Origin: Pelomyxa schiedti
Lineage: Eukaryota; Protista; Evosea
Assembly: GCA_020536535.1 (NCBI GenBank)
Contig: JAHLWZ010000016.1
Span: 186,001-250,000 of the forward strand
Reading direction: 5' to 3'
Length of the DNA: 64,000 nucleotides
Below the pieces are notes generated by a model, which saw only the letters and a list, made by a program, of their open reading frames with translations, searched no databases and had not been told where the DNA came from. The stretch's first letter is position 1; each line of letters begins with the position of its first letter. This document shows positions 1 through 20,615 of the stretch, piece after piece. The position numbers and the translations under genes are program-made.

Positions 1-3000
1 GTTGATTTGCGAGAAGATAGATGCTGCGAGTTCAACTGTGGTGCCATCTAAGTGAGTCCCAACAAGAACTATGTGAGGTTTTTCTGGAACCTCAATTCTA
101 CTTTTTGTGGCTTCCTTTTGGGAAACAGAAATCTGGTTCACCCAATATGTGATTTTTGGTGGAATGTTTAACTTTCCAGTGTCTGTTAGCTTTGCCAATG
201 CCACATCGAATAGAAGCAGAAATATAGAGTTGCTGCATAAGAAGAATTGATGTGAAGGATACAACACATCTTGGCCTCCTTAATTACTGTAAGGATAATC
301 AGTCTCACGGAGAAAGACAGACCTAAATCCCAGGCAACCCACATATGGTCACTCCTCTTCCTCAGTTTGAAGGGACTGTGAATAGCAACTCCATCTGTAG
401 CGAGATTCTTCCTCACATTTGCCAACTCCTTCATTTTCTGCATGCACCTCAGTAAAGTCGTCTTGCCCACACCACCATCCCCAACTAACAAGAGCTTGTG
501 ATTCTTCCACGGAACTGGTTCTTCTCCATTGAATTTAATAAAATGTGCCAGAACGTCCCAATGCTCATTTCGAAATCTCAGTGGAATGTTTTCCAATGGG
601 TTTCCTTCAAAAATAACTTTCTCAACTCGGTGCATCCACTGTGGTAGTTCATCGATGGCATTGAATGATATATCCAGCATTGAGCAAGAGATTCCACAAA
701 GAGCTGATGGGATGGTACGGAGTGAGAGGAAAGATAAATCCACATCTTGACCAGCCACTCCTCCTGCAAGGCATACTTCAGAAACAGCATCCCAGTTTTT
801 GCTTTTCACCCATTCTCGCAGAAGTAAGGACACAATGTGTCGAAGTGGGGCAGTATCTTTTGGGTGTAGAAGAAGTTGAATAATCTCCCGCACAGTTGAA
901 GGTCTCGCATTGCTGATGTCCAGGCCACCTTTAAACAGAAGAGATTCAATCATGACTTTGAAGGCAACTCCGCTTGGAGCTGTATGAAATGCAGTGTGCA
1001 GAATAGACAAGGCAGTTTCTTCGTCATCAATAAGTGCCACCTTCTTTATTGTAGTGGAACTTTGACTTACGCGAGGGATGTCTACTGCACTACTATCTGT
1101 TGGGAACAACTTGGCAAGTGACCGCGCTGAAGACCCTGAGCTAGAAGCAATACTAAAAATCTCGTCCAGCTCACTTGTTTCCAGCTCCTGCTGATTCCCA
1201 TGCAGGGTGCATGCAATAGAATTCATAAGTATGGCAAGCTCCACAGCATCGCCTGTCTTGATACAACTCCACAGCACCTTCACAAAGTCTGATCTTGTTC
1301 CGTGGCCAGAGAGGAGTGTGTTATGCTTTGTTTTGACTGCCTGAACTCGAGAAACGTTGGTTTCCAAGAAGGGTTTAATCTGAGCTTCAAACACTAGTGC
1401 CGCGGGTTGTTTGTAGGATGACAAAACGAGTGGCTTCCAAGAATCTCGATCCTCTGTCAAACAGCTCAGGAAAAGAGATACACAGAAGTAGTACCTTGGA
1501 GAATCCTTAAATATCTAAGAAACAAGTTACTCTTCAAAACAGCTGATAACGTTTAGAGGCTAAGGAGAAAATTCTTTCAGAGTACATTCCCAGTTGCTGA
1601 AAGTGGGGGGATCTGTATGAGGATACACAACAGAAAGTTTCTCAAGAGTGTGATGATTTTTCAATGCCTGAAGCATTTTTCCTCCTCCGTCAATGAATCT
1701 TGCTGGAGGTGAAGTTTATTTTTAGTCAAAGGGAAGCCAACACACAATCGAGACTGAGGCGTTTGAGGGTAAAATTCTTCTGTAAGTATCTGGGGAAAGA
1801 GAGACAAATATCAGGTAGGTAGCTTAGTTTGCCTGTCAGAGGGTAAAAGTGCACTACAAAGAAAGAAAGAAAAAAAAGAATTACGTGAAATGTCTAGTGC
1901 AGTAAGGTGATCCAAAACACGGAAAATGTGTGCTTCACATCCACGTGGCAAGGAATCTAGTGTGATTGTTTATGCTCTCTTCTTTTATATAATAAGGCAC
2001 TACGCTGGAGTATCAACTTGAGATTACTGTGTGGCATAGACTGTATTCCCACGGCAAGTGTTTTTATTGCTTCTTCTTCAATGAGAATACCTTAAGGAAA
2101 TCAATGATGTTTCTCAAAAAGATGACCAGTTCACTTGAGAGGTCCAGCTTATGCAAATAGGAGCAATGCTTCAGACTGTCTGCAATTTCAGTATAGATAG
2201 TGAGAAGCTCCTTGGTTGTGGCAAAAACTCCTGGGAAGGTCATGAAGTGGAGCCATTTTAATTTTCAACCGTTATACCACTCTCGTGCATTCCAATGCGA
2301 CATGTCAGCAAATGTTTGTTTTTAAAAATAGCCAAAAAAAGTCTATGATCAATGACACGAATGTCTGTAATGAAGCATTACAACAAAAAAAAAGGGGAAA
2401 ATCTTTCAAGCTTTCAACAGAAATGTCTAAGGGGAAATCAACTGCCAAATCTTCAACCACATCGTCCAAGGATTTAAATAGGCAAGAGTACAAGGTATCT
2501 GTGACGAAATTACCAAGCATCGAGATTAAATAGCATACCAATATCAATTACAATCTCCTTTCCTTTGCGTATAACCTGCTTATACTCATTTTCAAACCAG
2601 CTGTATTCAAACCATTGCTGTCTTCCTTCAGGGAATCAGTTAATTCTTAATCATACTAAAAAAAAAATACCATTCCAAGAAAAATGATTTTCAGAACAAA
2701 GAGGACGGAGATATTCACTTTCTGCTAATTGGAGTGCTTGCAAAAGAACAGCTTGAACCGATAAGGAATCACTTGGGGAGCACTTGATCAGTTTACTTGC
2801 ATGCAACTTCGAGAAGTGAGATAGGGATTGAGGGCAAAACATAACAACCATGGAAGCCATTGCGAAACCTTCAAGCAAGGAAACTTCACATCTTGCTTGT
2901 TGTTCCTCACTGGTACTTATCTCAGTGTCATTTGTGTAGGAAAATAGTTTACTTTGTGCAGGCCCTTCGACTGAGGACTCGTCAGTCCAATTAACGCATC

Positions 3001-13046: not shown

Positions 13047-14387
13047 TTAGGAAGAGAAGCCAATTGACAACACCAGGAAGTTCCACAAGGGAAATGAAAG
13101 AACCAGCACCACACCAACAGTGTGCAGGGGTGTCACGGTGGTGTCAATGACTGTGACACATGATTCTTCTGGGTTAGTGTGGAACAAGAACCCCATTGAA
13201 CCTTGCACTGTGGGCCTTCCACCTTTGCTCTTACTGGGTTTTTTTGTATTTGTGATGAGACTGCCTCCAGTTGTTTTTGGCAACGGAATCTCTTTTACCT
13301 GTTTTGTTGTGACTTGGTTATTGCAATTCCAGATTGGCACACTGCCACCCACTCTCCCTGAAGAGAAATACTCAGAATCACTGAGGGGCTGATAGGCACG
13401 TTCAGATAGCTTTCTTGCAATGCCACTTGATGCTTCAACTTCAAAGGAATGGTTCCCCACTTCAACGATGAAGGTGCGAGTACCGTCGTTCCTCCTCATT
13501 GAAAACACATGGAGGAACCTCGGGAGAACAGATACGTCAATTAGGCAACGTGTGACACATAGAACACACAGTGTGCCACTGGAGTGGGTTCCTTCCACGT
13601 CCACAATCAGCACATCTGGTGCGGATGCACTGTCCCCAACCACTGCCATCAGCAGTTGGTTGGGCTGCGATGGAATCCACGTCAAATCACCAGTACTGAA
13701 CCAGCCACCAGCAACAGAAAACTTATGTGGAAGCACAGCTGTTGTGACCCCTCCAGGCTTGTTGGCCTGTGCCACCAGTTCTTCCAGTTGCACATTCAGC
13801 CGTTTCGTGAGCAGCACTGTTTCCTGGTGCCCTCCGCGGTCCAAGTTGCCCCCTCTCACCAGCCACTTCCCATTTACTGCATCGCAACCCCACTCAAAGT
13901 CCACAGGCTCAGTATCCACGAGCCCAATTGTCTCCAAGCCGCCAGTGTTGCCGACGCAATTGCACAAATACAAGCCCTCAGGCCCACCCACATCGAGCCA
14001 GTCCTTCACCAAGAACAGCCTGTCACTCATCCAGCAACGGTTCTTTGGGAGCCCAGGCCACCTCCTCTCGATGTCACCCACCACACTCCCCAGCAGCGGT
14101 GACACCCTCACACACAGACAAGCTTGCATGAGTGTGTTAATGATGGTGCCCTTCGTCTTGCTGCGCCTGCCTGGCGGGGCCGGCGGCCCGCAGTCTCCTT
14201 CCGGTTCGTCGTAAAGGAACTTCTCGCCAGTCAGTTGCAACACAAACGTCCTGGCTGTACCCCTTGCCAGGTCCCACACCAACTGACCAACAACGTGACC
14301 AACCACAGGTAGGTGGGCCAGGGCACCCAGTTGCTCACGTGAATGTATCATCGAACTAACCACATAGTCGCCGCTCCCCTTAATCAT
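13047..14387 (-). CDS. Intronless hypothetical protein of a lineage-expanded family (446 aa)
   Basis: Long uninterrupted ORF. N-terminal REQLGAL motif followed by beta-rich repeats (VNGKWLV, LIVDVEGTHSSG..V), similar in layout to ORF 39752-41035. Confidence 0.75.
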   Translation of the reverse strand: MIKGSGDYVVSSMIHSREQLGALAHLPVVGHVVGQLVWDLARGTARTFVLQLTGEKFLYDEPEGDCGPPAPPGRRSKTKGTIINTLMQACLCVRVSPLLGSVVGDIERRWPGLPKNRCWMSDRLFLVKDWLDVGGPEGLYLCNCVGNTGGLETIGLVDTEPVDFEWGCDAVNGKWLVRGGNLDRGGHQETVLLTKRLNVQLEELVAQANKPGGVTTAVLPHKFSVAGGWFSTGDLTWIPSQPNQLLMAVVGDSASAPDVLIVDVEGTHSSGTLCVLCVTRCLIDVSVLPRFLHVFSMRRNDGTRTFIVEVGNHSFEVEASSGIARKLSERAYQPLSDSEYFSSGRVGGSVPIWNCNNQVTTKQVKEIPLPKTTGGSLITNTKKPSKSKGGRPTVQGSMGFLFHTNPEESCVTVIDTTVTPLHTVGVVLVLSFPLWNFLVLSIGFSS

Positions 14388-14633: not shown

Positions 14634-17600
14634 TTAGTTCGCGTCGTCGTCTTCCTCGTCACCTTCCTCCCACTCGCCTTCTTCCTCGTCGTCGTCTGCT
14701 TCTTCCTCTTGTTCTTCCTCCCTGAGCTCGGTTCTGCGAGTTATCAGAGCCGCGGCAAGGAGGCTAACCATGTCGTTCTTCTTGGGCTTCTCGGCTTCAA
14801 CTTGTGCCTGCAGTGTAGTTTTGGTTGTGGGTGGTTAGAGTGGTACAGAGAGTAATTGTTTTGTTTGCACTCGCGGAAAGGCAAGCATACCTGGTCAACA
14901 TGCTTGAGGCTGGCACCTTGTTGGATGGAGGAAAGGAGGTCGGCACGGCCACCTGTTGCAGCTTTTATATGTTGATATGAGTATCAGTAAGGAAAGGAAT
15001 CAGTGAAAGAGCCAAAGAAACACACGTGAAGGGGGCGCCGCCGCTCTGGCCACTGGAGGCGGCGGAGGAGCGCGAGGCGTGGGGCCCGAAGGAGGCGGCG
15101 GCGGGGGGGGGAGGCGGCGGCGGCGAGGAAGAGGACGGGGACGGGGACGCCGCGGGCTCGGGCTCGTCCTGAATTATGGGCGTGGCGGCGTGTGTCGAGT
15201 GCGGTGTCGATGCCGGTGCGGAATTGGACATTGAACTGAGTCTGGAACACTCCGCTTGAAGCCTGTCATTCTCTTGCTCGTGCTGTGGTTCGTGGGAGAA
15301 AAGAGGTTGTGATCGACAAAAGAAATTGTGGGTTAGGACACTTACTGTGGCGATGGTTCGTTGTAGTTGTTGTATCTTGGACTCGAATTGGGAGACTGTT
15401 TTGGTATGTGCTTCTGTGAGTTGAGCCTGCTCTTTTTTGCTTTCCACTCTGATTTTTGCTAGATCATCTATTCAGATAGCGTGAGTGAGGCTTGAAAAAT
15501 AATTCACAATACCCTCTTGTTTCTTCTTCAGGGCCTTCATTTCTCTTTCAAGGGTTTCACGGAGTCCGGCTAAGTCCGAGGCACCTTTAGTAGAGGATTC
15601 CACAGTGACTCTCAATTCCTTCAACTCGAGTGTGGCTTTGTTTGTTGCTGAGTGAGCATCATCTCGTTCTTTAAGGGCCACACTCAAAGCTTTTTTAGTA
15701 GTTTCTAACTTTTTCTCGTCACAAATTTATTGAAAAGACTATATCTGTACCTCTGTTTTAAGCAAGGCCATTTCTTTAGCAGCCCTTTCAGCTCCCCGCA
15801 TTTCTCCTTCCCGTGCAGCAGTTTCTTTAGCTGACCGCAGTTCGTCTTAGCAAAGAATGTCAGGTTGAGACGAAAGTGAGAAGTTACAAAAAAGCAAAAA
15901 TTAGAACTACTTCCATTAGAAATTAACACAAAATCCACATACCTTCAAATCGCTTTTGCATTTCAGCAAATTCACGCTTCAGCTTGTCTTGTGCAGCTTT
16001 TACTTCAACTGAAGTTCCCTGAGCAGCAACAGCAGAGTGCGCTTGTAATTCCCTTACCTGTGCCCGTAGTTATTTGAAGACAAGAATAGTAGTGTGTACC
16101 TCCGCATCTTTAGCTCTTACACTTGTGACAAGTGCCTCTTTCTCTTTTTCTACAGCAAGTAACCTTTTACGGCAATTTTCCACCTGGGAGTGATGTTAGG
16201 GAGGTAGAAGGGTACTCAAACGAACTTCGCTTTTTGACGTCTCCACCCCCTTAGCTAAATCAAGATTTTTGCCTCGCTCCCTGTTTATTTCCTCCTTCAG
16301 TCCTTTCATTTCCACTGTCAAGTGTTATAATGGTAGCTTTGTTGGGGGTGCTTCTTACGGTCGTATTTTGATTGCAATTCTTTAAGGCTTCTTTGCATCT
16401 CTTCACCAGCTCTATCTGGTAATCTTGCTTTAAGAGAGGCTTCTTGTACCTTAACGTGGTTTCTAGTATGCAGTGAAAGTGAATCCTTACTTCGAGTTCC
16501 AAGTTTCTTTTAGCTGTGGATAATGTTTCTTTGTCTTGAGTAAGAGTGGCCACACTTTTCTTCAAGGTATCTATCTGGGGAAGGCTGGTAGGGAAGAAGA
16601 TAGTCAGAGAAGGGATTGAACCTGTGCAACTTGCAATTGCAGCTTATCGATGAGAGAATCTTTTTCATGTATTTCTTTTCTCAAGCTCTCGATTAACTGT
16701 GTTTGAGCAGCATTGGCACTTGAATTTGAATTCGAGGTTGTTTGCAATGAAGACTTCATTGTAGGGGATGATACAGATGTGCTGTGAGTTAATTGTGGGC
16801 GAGTTGTGGGAACTGCTGGTGGACGGTTAACAGTGGGAGAACTGTAGGAGCTGGATCCACTTGAAGAAAGTGTGGAACTAAAAAAGGTCAGTACCGAAGA
16901 AGTAGAAAGGGGAAGGAACAACGGTTGTTTTGCTGTGACAACTGATGAGCCTGTGGCTAATGTTTTATCAGAGGGGGGAAAAGAAAGTTGCATGCAGACC
17001 AGGTGTTTTTGTGGCACTACCATTTTGTATAGGTGCTGGTTTGACTGTTGAAGTAGTATTTGTACCACCTACAATAATATTAGTGCTTAATCTTGAACAA
17101 ATTTAACCTGAAGTTTTCAAAGACCCTGTTGATGAAGGAACAGTAGGAGAGGGCCCTTTACAAAGTGATTTTGGAATTGGGGAGGCATATGGACATACGT
17201 GTTATCGGGGAGGGCCTGGTAGTTTGCTGGTTGTTGGGTGCTGTGGTTGGTTTAGGACTTGTTGGAACTGATGGCTTTGTTGCTGGGGAGGGAGAAGCCG
17301 TCTTGGGGGGTGCTCCTGTACCAGTTTTCGAGGATTGATTTGGTTCTGGTTCATTAGTAATGTTTTTTAGCATATCCATATCAATATTCTTCAACAAGTC
17401 CGTTGCTTCTGCTCTTGTCATAGGTTTTTGTCCTTGTTTCTAATACTAGTTAGAGATGAAGCTGGAGGAAAGGTGAGAAACAACCTTGAGTTCAACATCG
17501 AGATCCGAAAACAGTTTGGAAAGTTCAGGTGGCAGATTAGAGGTAACAAACCCCTTTTCTTCAGAGTAACCAATATGCCCTCCATGGTGGCATGATGTCG

Positions 17601-18324
17601 GCCCTTGGGAGACATTATGAAAATTGCATCACCCATTAAGTTGGAAAAACCGGTAATTACAAGGGCCTTTTCTTCTTCTTTTGTATCCCCAACTAATTTA
17701 TTCATAAAGGACATAAAGGTTCCTTTCCTTTAAAGGTGGTTAGGACCAGTAGAGTTTCAAATAGATATGAAAGAGATAGAACTCACGTTGAAGTTGACGT
17801 TGACGTTGAAGATGGTGTTGGAGTTGAAGCAGGTTTTGCAGCTGCTGGCTTAGCGGTTGTACTACCACCTGATGGTGTAGAACGTGAAGCAGAATTACTA
17901 TGTGGAGTTGTGCTCTTTGATGCTGGCTTCTTCTTTCTTTTTCTTGCACCAGTGGGAGTATCACCTTTGGGCCTTGATCCAGTCCTGCGAAGCTTTGGAT
18001 TTTCCGCCAGTGTATCATTTCCAGCAACATACTCTAATGCACCATAAAAAACGAATTCCAACACCACAGAAAAAGAAAAAAAAAACTGAGTGGCAGAAAC
18101 AAAAAAATAGCCTCCAATTCGCCACAAAAACAAAACCCAACAGACGATGTGTCGATGTAACACCAATAAAAAACCAAAAAAATCTAAAAAAAAAAAGGGA
18201 ACCAACTGGGGGTGGAAGACACGGCTGACGGTGCCTTTGAGTGATTGTGTTGACATGTGATGCACTTCTCAGGCATGAACGGATTGGGTCGCATATTGGC
18301 ACACGAGCATGTCTTGCACGACAT
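14634..18324 (-). CDS. WASP-family-like actin nucleation-promoting factor: Cys/His motif, basic region, CRIB, coiled coil, polyproline, WH2-C-A
   Basis: Spliced CRIB VITGPTSCHHGGHIGYSEEKGFVTSNLPPELSKLF (about 17500-17670); WH2 GGRADLLSSIQQGASLKHVD (14891-14960); central MVSLLAAALITRRTEL; acidic tail DDDEEEGEWEE...*. Heptad-rich exons at about 15330-16700. A 1-nt frame discrepancy lies at the G9 run 15103-15111. Confidence 0.85.
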
Positions 18325-18672
18325 TTTTGATGTTACAGCCTTTTTTTTTCCTCTCTGGTGTGTTGCTCACACCTTTGTTTGTCTCTCGTATAGTTTTCCC
18401 CACGACCTTTCGTTTGGTGGCCTTCAAAACCCCGAGAAACGTCGATCGGTGTTTGCCACAGCTCAAAAATGGCCTTTTTGGAAATGTTGGTACACGATCA
18501 AACTCGAGTGTCTGAGCACATGTAGCCCACGTCTGCACAGCTGGAAATCAACCAGTAGCTTTACTCTTTTCTCTGGCCTCAGAGACTCCGGAAAAGGACA
18601 CTCGATCAGATCGACGATCGACATTTCCTCCATCGCCTAAAACCGAAAACGGACAAACATTTCAATTTGACG

Positions 18673-20615
18673 ATGCGGGGCCTGTTCTTGTTGGTAGTGG
18701 TGGCTTGTTTCGTCTCCACGTTGATTAGAAGTTCTGTTTCCCTCCCGAATTTTGTGGTGTTCTTTGCTGATGACTTGGGCTCAGTTACCTTCCATTTCTT
18801 TTCAAATCTCCACCTCTCCCAAAGCCACTCCCTGCCACTTTTTTCAACTCCCTTAATTTTGTTTTAAGGACTTGGGTGATGTGAGCCCCACGGTTTTTAC
18901 ACCAAATATTGATCGCATGCGTAGTGAGGGAATGAAGCTCTCGCAATGGTAGTCTACATTCTTTGTCTTCTTTCTTTTGAATATCAGTAATTGGTTCTTC
19001 TCACAATTACATTTGTTTTTGCTCGCAGGTACGCCCCTGCTGTTGTTTGTACTCCAGCGAGGGCTACTTTGTTGACTGGGAGATACGCACTGCGCAGTGG
19101 AATGACAGACAATCTAATGAGGGTGTTGGAATGCGATGCTGCGGGAGGATTGCCTGAAAACGAGACGACATTTGCCACACACCTTAAAACTAAGGGATAT
19201 GCTACGGCTGCTATCGGAAAGGTTTATTTCTACTCACCAATTGAGCATCACACCTAATTCACATAATTTCTCGTCTAGTGGCACTTGGGCCAAAGAGAGG
19301 AGTATTTACCTACAAATAGGGGATTTGACTATTACTATGGAATTCCTTATAGCATTGATATGGGCCTATTCTTAGAGGGTCCATGCCAGCAGCTGGGAAA
19401 AGTAAGATATCCTTAGTTCAAACTAAGTGAAATCTGAATTGTAAAGTGTGTTTGGCTCCCCCTTCTGGAAGGGACCAAAGTTGTAAAGCAGCCTGTGAGT
19501 CCTTATGAGCTCGCTCCTCTTCTTAGGCAGAAAGCCATTGATTGGATCACAGCTCACAAAGACTCCCCGTTTTTATTGTATTACCCATCACCCCACACCC
19601 ATGTAACAGACATATGCCTCTCAAATGGAACTACTATACGGCAGTACAGCTCTTCAATGGTGAGTCTTTCAACCTAGAAATTGTCACTTTCCACTTATCA
19701 CAGTGTAGTTTACTGGTACTTCCAAGAGGGGAACATACGGAGATGCTGTTCAGGAACTTGACTGGGAGCTTGGTGGAATCCTGGATACACTTCGAAGTTT
19801 AGGATTGGAAGAAAATACACTCGTATTTTTTGTTTCTGATCAGGTCCACAATCCCTCTTGAACCCCGTTTTTTTTACTGAGTACCATTCAGGGTCCTTGG
19901 GTAAAGCTCGGGACGGAGAGCGGAAATGTGGGAATTTTTTCTGGGAGGTATGCCTCATACATGGACGTCGGAAAAGGTAGTACTTGGGAGGGTGGCCTCA
20001 GAGTCTCCTCATACGCCTGGTGGCCTTCTCACATTGCTGCGGGGTCAACTTCACAAGAAGTTTGCATGCACCCTTATTCGTGTTGAATAGTGATTTCTTT
20101 CACCAGGTTCTCAGCCACATGGATATCTTTTCAACAATCCTGTCTCTTGCAGGCATTTCTCCTCCAGATAATGTTACCATTGATGGGCACGATATTACCG
20201 GTGTTCTCACACCAAGTCCTGACATTCCATATACACCCCTCGATTACCTTTTCCTTTACCGCGATGAAGACCTCTACGCAGTGCGGAATGGGGCATACAA
20301 AGTCCACTACACCACACACTCTGGATATGGCCATGAACCGGCCATACAACACGATCCTCCTCTAGTTTTCAATGTGGAAGTAGACCCATCTGAGGCCTAC
20401 CCCCTTGATACCAATGACACAACAATACAACAAGTAATCTTCTCTTCCACTCCCCAGGTACACTAAATTCATCCCGTTAGGTCATTGTAAATTGCCAGGC
20501 GGCAGTTGACCAACACAAAGCAACAATGGTTCCAGGGCACAACCAGTTGAAAATTGCAGCACCACAATTCACAATATGTTGTGATGAATCCACAGATTGT
20601 ATTTGTGGACAGTAA
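18673..20615 (+). CDS. Arylsulfatase (Cys-type, ARSA/ARSG-like), secreted or lysosomal
   Basis: Signal peptide, [77 protein letters not shown]. Confidence 0.9.

Follow-up and report, generated by a model that had tools for sequence, protein, structure and literature searches.

The 64,000-nucleotide stretch of contig JAHLWZ010000016.1 of Pelomyxa schiedti analysed here (the window; positions are counted from its first letter) holds, on the minus strand at 18324-14634, a real gene for a WASP-type Arp2/3 activator. With a probability of roughly 0.88, we take this gene to be the P. schiedti ortholog of the amoebozoan type-II WAWHs, which are known WASP-family nucleation-promoting factors. A sequence-only reading of the same DNA had listed the parts of the encoded protein and taken their arrangement for a novel architecture. 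Translation, splicing and motif matching place all of these parts at their coordinates and in their order on the minus strand, and the architecture itself, CxxC pair and coiled coil included, was described in 2012 as WAWH type II (PMC3298513). What is new is the presence of type II in the lineage of the Archamoebae and a splice-site error that hides the active end of the deposited protein.

Relationship to type-II WAWH

WAWH stands for ‘WASP without WH1 domain’ and was introduced by Kollmar, Lbik & Enge (2012, BMC Res Notes 5:88; PMC3298513). Type II is defined by two N-terminal CxxC motifs, a serine-rich region, a GTPase-binding domain (GBD), a long coiled coil, a proline-rich region and the WH2-central-acidic module (VCA or WCA) (PMC3298513). 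It includes DdWAWH_A of Dictyostelium discoideum and its orthologs in D. fasciculatum, D. purpureum, Polysphondylium pallidum and Acytostelium subglobosum (PMC3298513). In the supplementary alignment, DdWAWH_A and the four other Dictyostelid proteins carry CQNCDCKTFDPNPFKPLYCSICLHNH at the N-terminus, EISGPTDYKHNTHIG... in the GBD and the C helix MVNILVRALIDRR, as well as a long coiled coil, polyproline, WH2 and the acidic Trp, and the Entamoeba WAWHs in the same alignment have neither the CxxC motif nor the coiled coil (PMC3298513).

The Pelomyxa gene is assigned to type II because the published definition matches its product part for part and because the modules of DdWAWH_A align with it in order. 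The features of the product are, from the N-terminus to the C-terminus:

18318-18241, minus strand: Cys/His motif C-x2-C-x-C-x5-NPF-x-P-x2-C-x2-C-x-H-x-H, residues 3-28
18010-17981, minus strand: LAENPKLRRT, residues 48-57
17944-17927, minus strand: basic patch RKRKKK, residues 70-75, not next to the CRIB but about 70 residues upstream
17657-17383, minus strand: GBD, consisting of the CRIB and a WAID-like helical part, to about residue 206
17352-16703, minus strand: disordered linker rich in Ser, Thr and Pro by composition, residues 217-391
16702-15232, minus strand: coiled coil, about residues 392-727 (about 335 residues), over 10 short exons
15219-14954, minus strand: Pro/Ser-rich region, including the run of seven prolines below
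15123-15103, minus strand: seven consecutive prolines (P7), residues 764-770
14947-14897, minus strand: WH2 (V) RADLLSSIQQGASLKHV, 36.2 bits with Pfam WH2 on exon 18 (cut-off 23.1)
14771-14724, minus strand: C helix MVSLLAAALITRRTEL, found with a regular expression of the C-domain pattern as worded in PMC3298513
14771-14637, minus strand: C helix and acidic tail containing GEW, directly followed by the stop codon TAA at 14636-14634

To test homology to DdWAWH_A, we took short segments of the published supplementary alignment, since a database search with the CRIB exon (see below) reached no Dictyostelid. Each segment was compared with the Pelomyxa model by Smith-Waterman alignment and against 500 shuffles. 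The four modules (N-terminal motif, GBD, WH2 and C plus acidic region) match the Pelomyxa protein in the same order. The GBD is the strongest, with 24 of 61 residues identical in an ungapped alignment across CRIB and WAID (z=21.6), followed by the N-terminal motif (13/26, z=13) and the C plus acidic region (14/36, z=7.1); in none of these three did any of the 500 shuffles reach the score. The WH2, with 9 identities in 17 residues, z=3.5 and 6/500 shuffles reaching the score, is weaker than the other modules.

The features shared with type II thus comprise the lack of a WH1 domain, an identically spaced Cys/His motif, a Ser/Thr-rich region, a GBD of CRIB and WAID, a coiled coil placed between the GBD and the proline-rich region, polyproline, WH2, a C helix of the pattern M-x3-L-x3-L-x2-RR-x2-[LM] and an acidic tail with Trp. 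The differences are minor: the Pelomyxa protein is archamoebal, its coiled coil is shorter, and its WH2 ends in LKHV rather than LKKV. Two further differences, in the CRIB and in the basic patch, are taken up in the Discussion. The two WH1-less WASPs of Dictyostelium that have a GBD and WCA are WASP-B and WASP-C (PMC8305917), encoded by wasB (Q7KWP7) and wasC (Q54QH4), respectively (UniProt identifiers from PMC8847673). One or the other of these two should correspond to DdWAWH_A.

When 1.84 billion representative proteins were searched with the 39-residue CRIB exon, a second archamoebal member came to light. A Trinity transcript of Mastigella eilhardi (EukProt) contains a complete open reading frame (ORF) of 705 residues that is 67% identical over this exon and colinear with the Pelomyxa model, with 356 of 678 residues identical. 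N-terminal motif, CRIB, coiled coil and WCA all lie on this one transcript. The combination of CRIB, coiled coil and WCA that the sequence-only reading proposed to look for in other Amoebozoa is accordingly present both in Mastigella and in the Dictyostelids. Its placing of CRIB and WCA on one transcript holds for the Mastigella ortholog, where a single mRNA carries both, and for Pelomyxa by conservation only. A second Trinity isoform from Mastigella, of 753 residues, diverges inside the acidic region. It carries an Ala-, Pro- and Val-rich insert of about 60 residues there, and its last residues are ...NSEW; it looks like the product of a retained intron or of a different 3´ exon, again with an acidic Trp at its end.

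With unrestricted length, the CRIB-exon search gave 11 matches at E<=1e-3. Besides Pelomyxa and Mastigella, these are animal N-WASP fragments and multi-CRIB proteins, and no Dictyostelid protein is among them. A search with a 5-residue word index, using regions 1-190 and 1-40 of the Mastigella protein, returned only the query; it also missed the deposited Pelomyxa protein KAH3767818.1, so that its negatives weigh little. The Mastigella ORF and KAH3767818.1 have NPFMPEKC, VITGPT and TSNLPP in common.

Gene model

Three-frame translation of 18450-14500 and explicit splicing yielded a single ORF of 877 residues that runs from the ATG at 18324 to the TAA at 14636-14634 in 19 coding exons. The 18 introns are all GT..AG, measure 39-173 nt (mostly 39-47) and keep a single frame throughout. 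P. schiedti is a free-living anaerobic archamoeba with 7.4 introns per gene, and the gene models of its genome come from Augustus, PASA and EVM (PMC8887013). The exons, obtained by explicit splicing, are:

Exons 1-5, minus strand: 18324-18207, 18033-17787, 17727-17651, 17603-17485, 17439-17199
Exons 6-10, minus strand: 17155-17108, 17068-17000, 16956-16622, 16574-16491, 16449-16359
Exons 11-15, minus strand: 16314-16226, 16183-16100, 16057-15943, 15845-15751, 15708-15513
Exons 16-19, minus strand: 15467-15346, 15282-15024, 14961-14891, 14807-14634

The linker contains an optional in-frame intron of 45 nt at 16922-16878 (GTTGTT..TTTTAG), the splicing of which removes 15 residues and gives 20 exons and a protein of 862 residues. 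The deposited model removes this segment. Its translation, LFLPLSTSSVLTFFS, is oddly hydrophobic, which makes a true intron probable.

N-terminal region

The Cys/His motif reads CKTCSC...NPFMPEKCITCQHNH in Pelomyxa, and its two CxxC pairs are CKTC (residues 3-6) and CITC (residues 21-24). Across all six reading frames of the window the corresponding regular expression matches just once; it matches the Mastigella protein as well, at residues 4-29. The five Cys and two His keep an invariant spacing from the Dictyostelids to the Archamoebae, and the spacing in the Dictyostelid WAWH_A sequences of the published alignment is identical. The N-terminal exon has no match in Pfam or in a sequence search of the PDB, and no functional study of the Cys/His-NPF motif was found in the literature searched. 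Judging from its sequence, the motif is probably a zinc-binding or targeting module. A resemblance to the N-terminus of MPRIP/TRIOBP, as suggested by the sequence-only reading, is unsupported by the Pfam and PDB searches, which did not include a direct comparison with MPRIP/TRIOBP sequences.

Pfam was run on the exon translations, on KAH3767818.1 and on the two Mastigella ORFs rather than on the 877-residue model itself. The LAENPKLRRT of exon 2, conserved in Mastigella as VLAEKPKLKKT, had been called WH2-like. It has no Pfam WH2 match at E<=5, and we reject it as a second WH2 for want of support. Mastigella has a K-rich stretch at the position equivalent to RKRKKK. Residues 81-120, of which 68% are Ser, Thr or Pro, form the serine-rich region after the N-terminal motif, and the residues directly before the CRIB are mixed to acidic (DTKEEEKALV).

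GTPase-binding domain

The CRIB (residues 146-159) reads ITG|PTSCHHGGHIG and is split at the bar by the expected 47-nt GT..AG intron, found in place at 17650-17604; the WAID-like helical part crosses a 45-nt intron at 17484-17440. Pfam PBD gives 24.3 bits on exon 4 and 22.8 bits on KAH3767818.1 (cut-off 21.3). In the PDB, the sequence matches of the CRIB exon are all GBDs of WASP or N-WASP (8s5t, 1cee, 2lnh, 1ej5), with E ~1e-3. An AlphaFold2 model of the isolated Pelomyxa GBD shows a hairpin and two helices at a mean pLDDT of 58.

The window also contains a multi-exon gene for a Rho/Rac-family GTPase on the minus strand at 61087-59885, recognized by MAGIKKSVKIVLVGDGAVGKT..., FPKVYVPTV, LVGTKLDLR and YLECSALTQ. 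The protein has a long C-terminal extension rich in Ser, Thr and Pro that ends in ...WKRNKDKTKH, apparently without a CAAX box. Such an end is unusual for Rac, which bears on any proposal of this protein as a CRIB partner.

Coiled coil and WCA module

The long coiled coil lies where it had been expected, between the GBD and the polyproline. The region is charged, heptad-patterned and contains one proline in about residues 392-727, and AlphaFold2 predicts near-continuous helices in its Mastigella equivalent (residues 277-601, pLDDT 70-88). Pfam returned weak generic coiled-coil matches only and a PDB sequence search gave no match at E<=0.01, so that no specific relative of the coiled coil emerges.

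The WH2-central-acidic module with its GEW is complete, as judged by the Pfam WH2 score, the C pattern and the presence of the acidic Trp. The SSIQQGASLKHVD of the WH2 is identical in Mastigella. The C region of the two species is conserved as KKNDMVS(L/I)LAAALI(T/S)RRTE(L/M)REEE, with no indel across the junction between the WH2 and C exons.

Tandem splice donors and the deposited annotation

The gene is represented in GenBank by KAH3767818.1, ‘hypothetical protein Pelo_342 [Pelomyxa schiedti]’, of 802 residues, which is 100% identical over the CRIB exon. The deposited model shares 17 of the 18 introns, adds the 45-nt intron described above and shifts the 18th donor by 2 nt; its protein is reproduced exactly from the window by splicing out 16922-16878 and using the donor after 15026. 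The two GT donors stand in tandem, 2 nt apart, at 15026-15024 of the minus strand (..TTCAC|GT|GTGTTT). Splicing after 15024 joins ...TTCACGT to CTGCAACAGG and keeps the frame into WH2-C-A. Splicing after 15026 to the same acceptor joins ...TTCAC to CTGCAACAGG, shifts the frame and loses WH2-C-A, which is replaced by a tail of 21 residues, rich in Cys, Pro and Arg, that ends at a TGA (14897-14895). The deposited gene thus ends at position 14895 of the window, and the exon for the C and acidic regions (14807-14634) belongs to no annotated gene. The claim that the activator was hidden is borne out in this form, its WCA being absent from the public protein through a choice between donors 2 nt apart. 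Judged by sequence conservation, the loss of the whole WH2-C-A through use of the upstream donor is an annotation error.

Neighbouring genes

A sulfatase gene lies on the plus strand at 18667-20466 (Pfam Sulfatase and Sulfatase_C, PF00884 and PF14707; annotated product of 494 residues). The two genes are transcribed divergently, the sulfatase gene beginning about 340 bp from the WAWH ATG, so that they would share a short promoter region. On the other side, an ORF of 446 residues without a Pfam match on the minus strand (13047-14387) overlaps an ORF of 264 residues on the plus strand (13420-14214), and the deposited annotation picks the plus-strand ORF as the gene.

Discussion

The architecture of the Pelomyxa protein differs from that of canonical WASP, WAVE, WASH and WHAMM/JMY, its N-terminal motif belongs to no Pfam family, and its GenBank label says nothing beyond ‘hypothetical protein’. 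These points could speak for the distinct, undescribed class of Rac-regulated, oligomerising nucleation-promoting factors that the sequence-only reading envisaged. The likeness to canonical WASP/N-WASP is in the GBD sequence, in the order from the GBD through the proline-rich region to WH2, C and acidic tail, and presumably in the logic of autoinhibition. In contrast to canonical WASP/N-WASP, the protein has no WH1, no basic region adjoining the CRIB, a single WH2, and a coiled coil of 335 residues between the GBD and the proline-rich region. WHAMM and JMY have N-terminal domains of their own and two or three WH2 motifs, and are not known to have a CRIB/GBD. The Pelomyxa protein resembles them in that a proline-rich region and WCA come after a central coiled coil, but it has a CRIB, and no Pfam match to the WHAMM/JMY families was seen in the exon translations or in the deposited and Mastigella proteins. 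A new class is nevertheless highly improbable, since the same architecture, with the coiled coil between the GBD and the proline-rich region, was published as WAWH type II, and since the homology to Dictyostelium is significant in three of the four conserved modules and weaker for the 17-residue WH2. Still less credible is a canonical WASP of which the WH1 exons were overlooked upstream. WH1 domains can diverge and be split by introns, but the start of the sulfatase gene leaves no room for a WH1 exon upstream of the ATG, Pfam finds no WH1 in the exon translations, KAH3767818.1 or either Mastigella ORF, and the N-terminus with its Met and Cys/His motif is also the protein start in the complete Mastigella transcript ORF and in the Dictyostelid proteins. 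The gene is therefore of the WASP type without WH1, as the sequence-only reading had it.

A different question is whether the annotated product of 802 residues, with GBD and coiled coil but no WCA, is genuine, be it the sole product of the gene or one regulated isoform. Such a form could heterodimerise with the full-length protein and damp it, or just tie up active Rac. In its favour, each donor is a GT and no clear preference emerges from the other introns of the gene; transcript data (PASA/EVM) went into refining the deposited model; and Mastigella also has two transcript isoforms that differ at the C-terminus. Against this, the frameshifted tail of 21 residues has no counterpart in Mastigella, whereas the 81 in-frame residues match Pfam WH2 and agree with the Mastigella WCA at about 70% of positions, without indels across the next exon junction. 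Conservation of this kind is expected only if the exons at 14961-14634 are translated in the frame set by the 15024 donor. We consider a genuine product of 802 residues unlikely overall: very unlikely as the sole product, and conceivable as a minor isoform.

Several observations weigh against the assignment to type II or against parts of the gene model behind it. In Pelomyxa the PBD score barely exceeds the cut-off, and in Mastigella it falls short. A strict CRIB consensus expression fails in Pelomyxa, where the Phe at the Phe/Tyr position is replaced by Cys, which also sets the protein apart from the published type II. In the Mastigella CRIB (residues 122-135), the first His is replaced by Arg and a Gly by Ala. 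With such non-consensus CRIBs and marginal PBD scores, binding of a GTPase is not assured from sequence. Foldseek ranks the WASP GBD 1cee_B first for the model of the GBD, but not significantly so (E=0.24). Type II is said to be without a basic region, and Pelomyxa has RKRKKK, albeit far from the CRIB. Finally, the deposited model, made with Augustus, PASA and EVM, took the donor at 15026, and the use of 15024 is supported by the ortholog transcript and by conservation. That the archamoebal CRIBs each depart from the consensus at a different key position while the flanking GBD is conserved hints at a relaxed or altered GTPase specificity. For comparison, the GBD of WASP-B binds RacC, Rac1B, RacA and RacB, and WASP-B and WASP-C localise to clathrin puncta (PMC8305917).

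By analogy with WASP biochemistry, the C helix of a type-II WAWH in Pelomyxa would fold back on the WAID part of the GBD and so keep the protein autoinhibited. Binding of a GTP-bound Rac-type GTPase to the CRIB would release the WCA, whereupon the WH2 would deliver an actin monomer and the C region and acidic Trp would engage Arp2/3, such that a branch is nucleated. Dimerisation strongly raises the potency of VCA on Arp2/3, and the coiled coil of about 335 residues may make the protein a constitutive dimer or oligomer. The Cys/His motif, probably zinc-binding, may together with the basic patch replace WH1 as a targeting module, and the Cys/His-NPF motif is the best candidate for a WH1-like targeting role. 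Rac regulation, oligomerisation and Arp2/3 activation of the Pelomyxa protein are in this way inferred from the biochemistry of the WASP family. Two bolder possibilities can be added, and we hold the chance that one or the other applies to be slim. Either both donors are used and the WCA-less isoform of GBD and coiled coil heterodimerises as a built-in dominant negative, or the Cys/His-NPF motif is a zinc-binding targeting module that also occurs outside WAWH, e.g. in MPRIP-like N-termini. If the latter were true, type-II WAWH would be tied to a conserved cortical or membrane receptor.

The value of the finding is modest, and no long-standing question is opened by a type-II WAWH in Pelomyxa. 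It corrects a public gene model, KAH3767818.1, that has been deprived of its catalytic WH2-C-A, and a census of Archamoebae Arp2/3 activators made from the deposited proteome would miss this protein. The Cys/His-NPF motif, which falls into no Pfam family and matches no solved structure, would be a sensible object of study for those who work on WASP-B and WASP-C in Dictyostelium. Since the free-living Pelomyxa and Mastigella have the features of type II and the Entamoeba WAWHs do not, the sequences suggest that type II already existed before Archamoebae and Dictyostelids diverged, and that Entamoeba lost or remodelled it.

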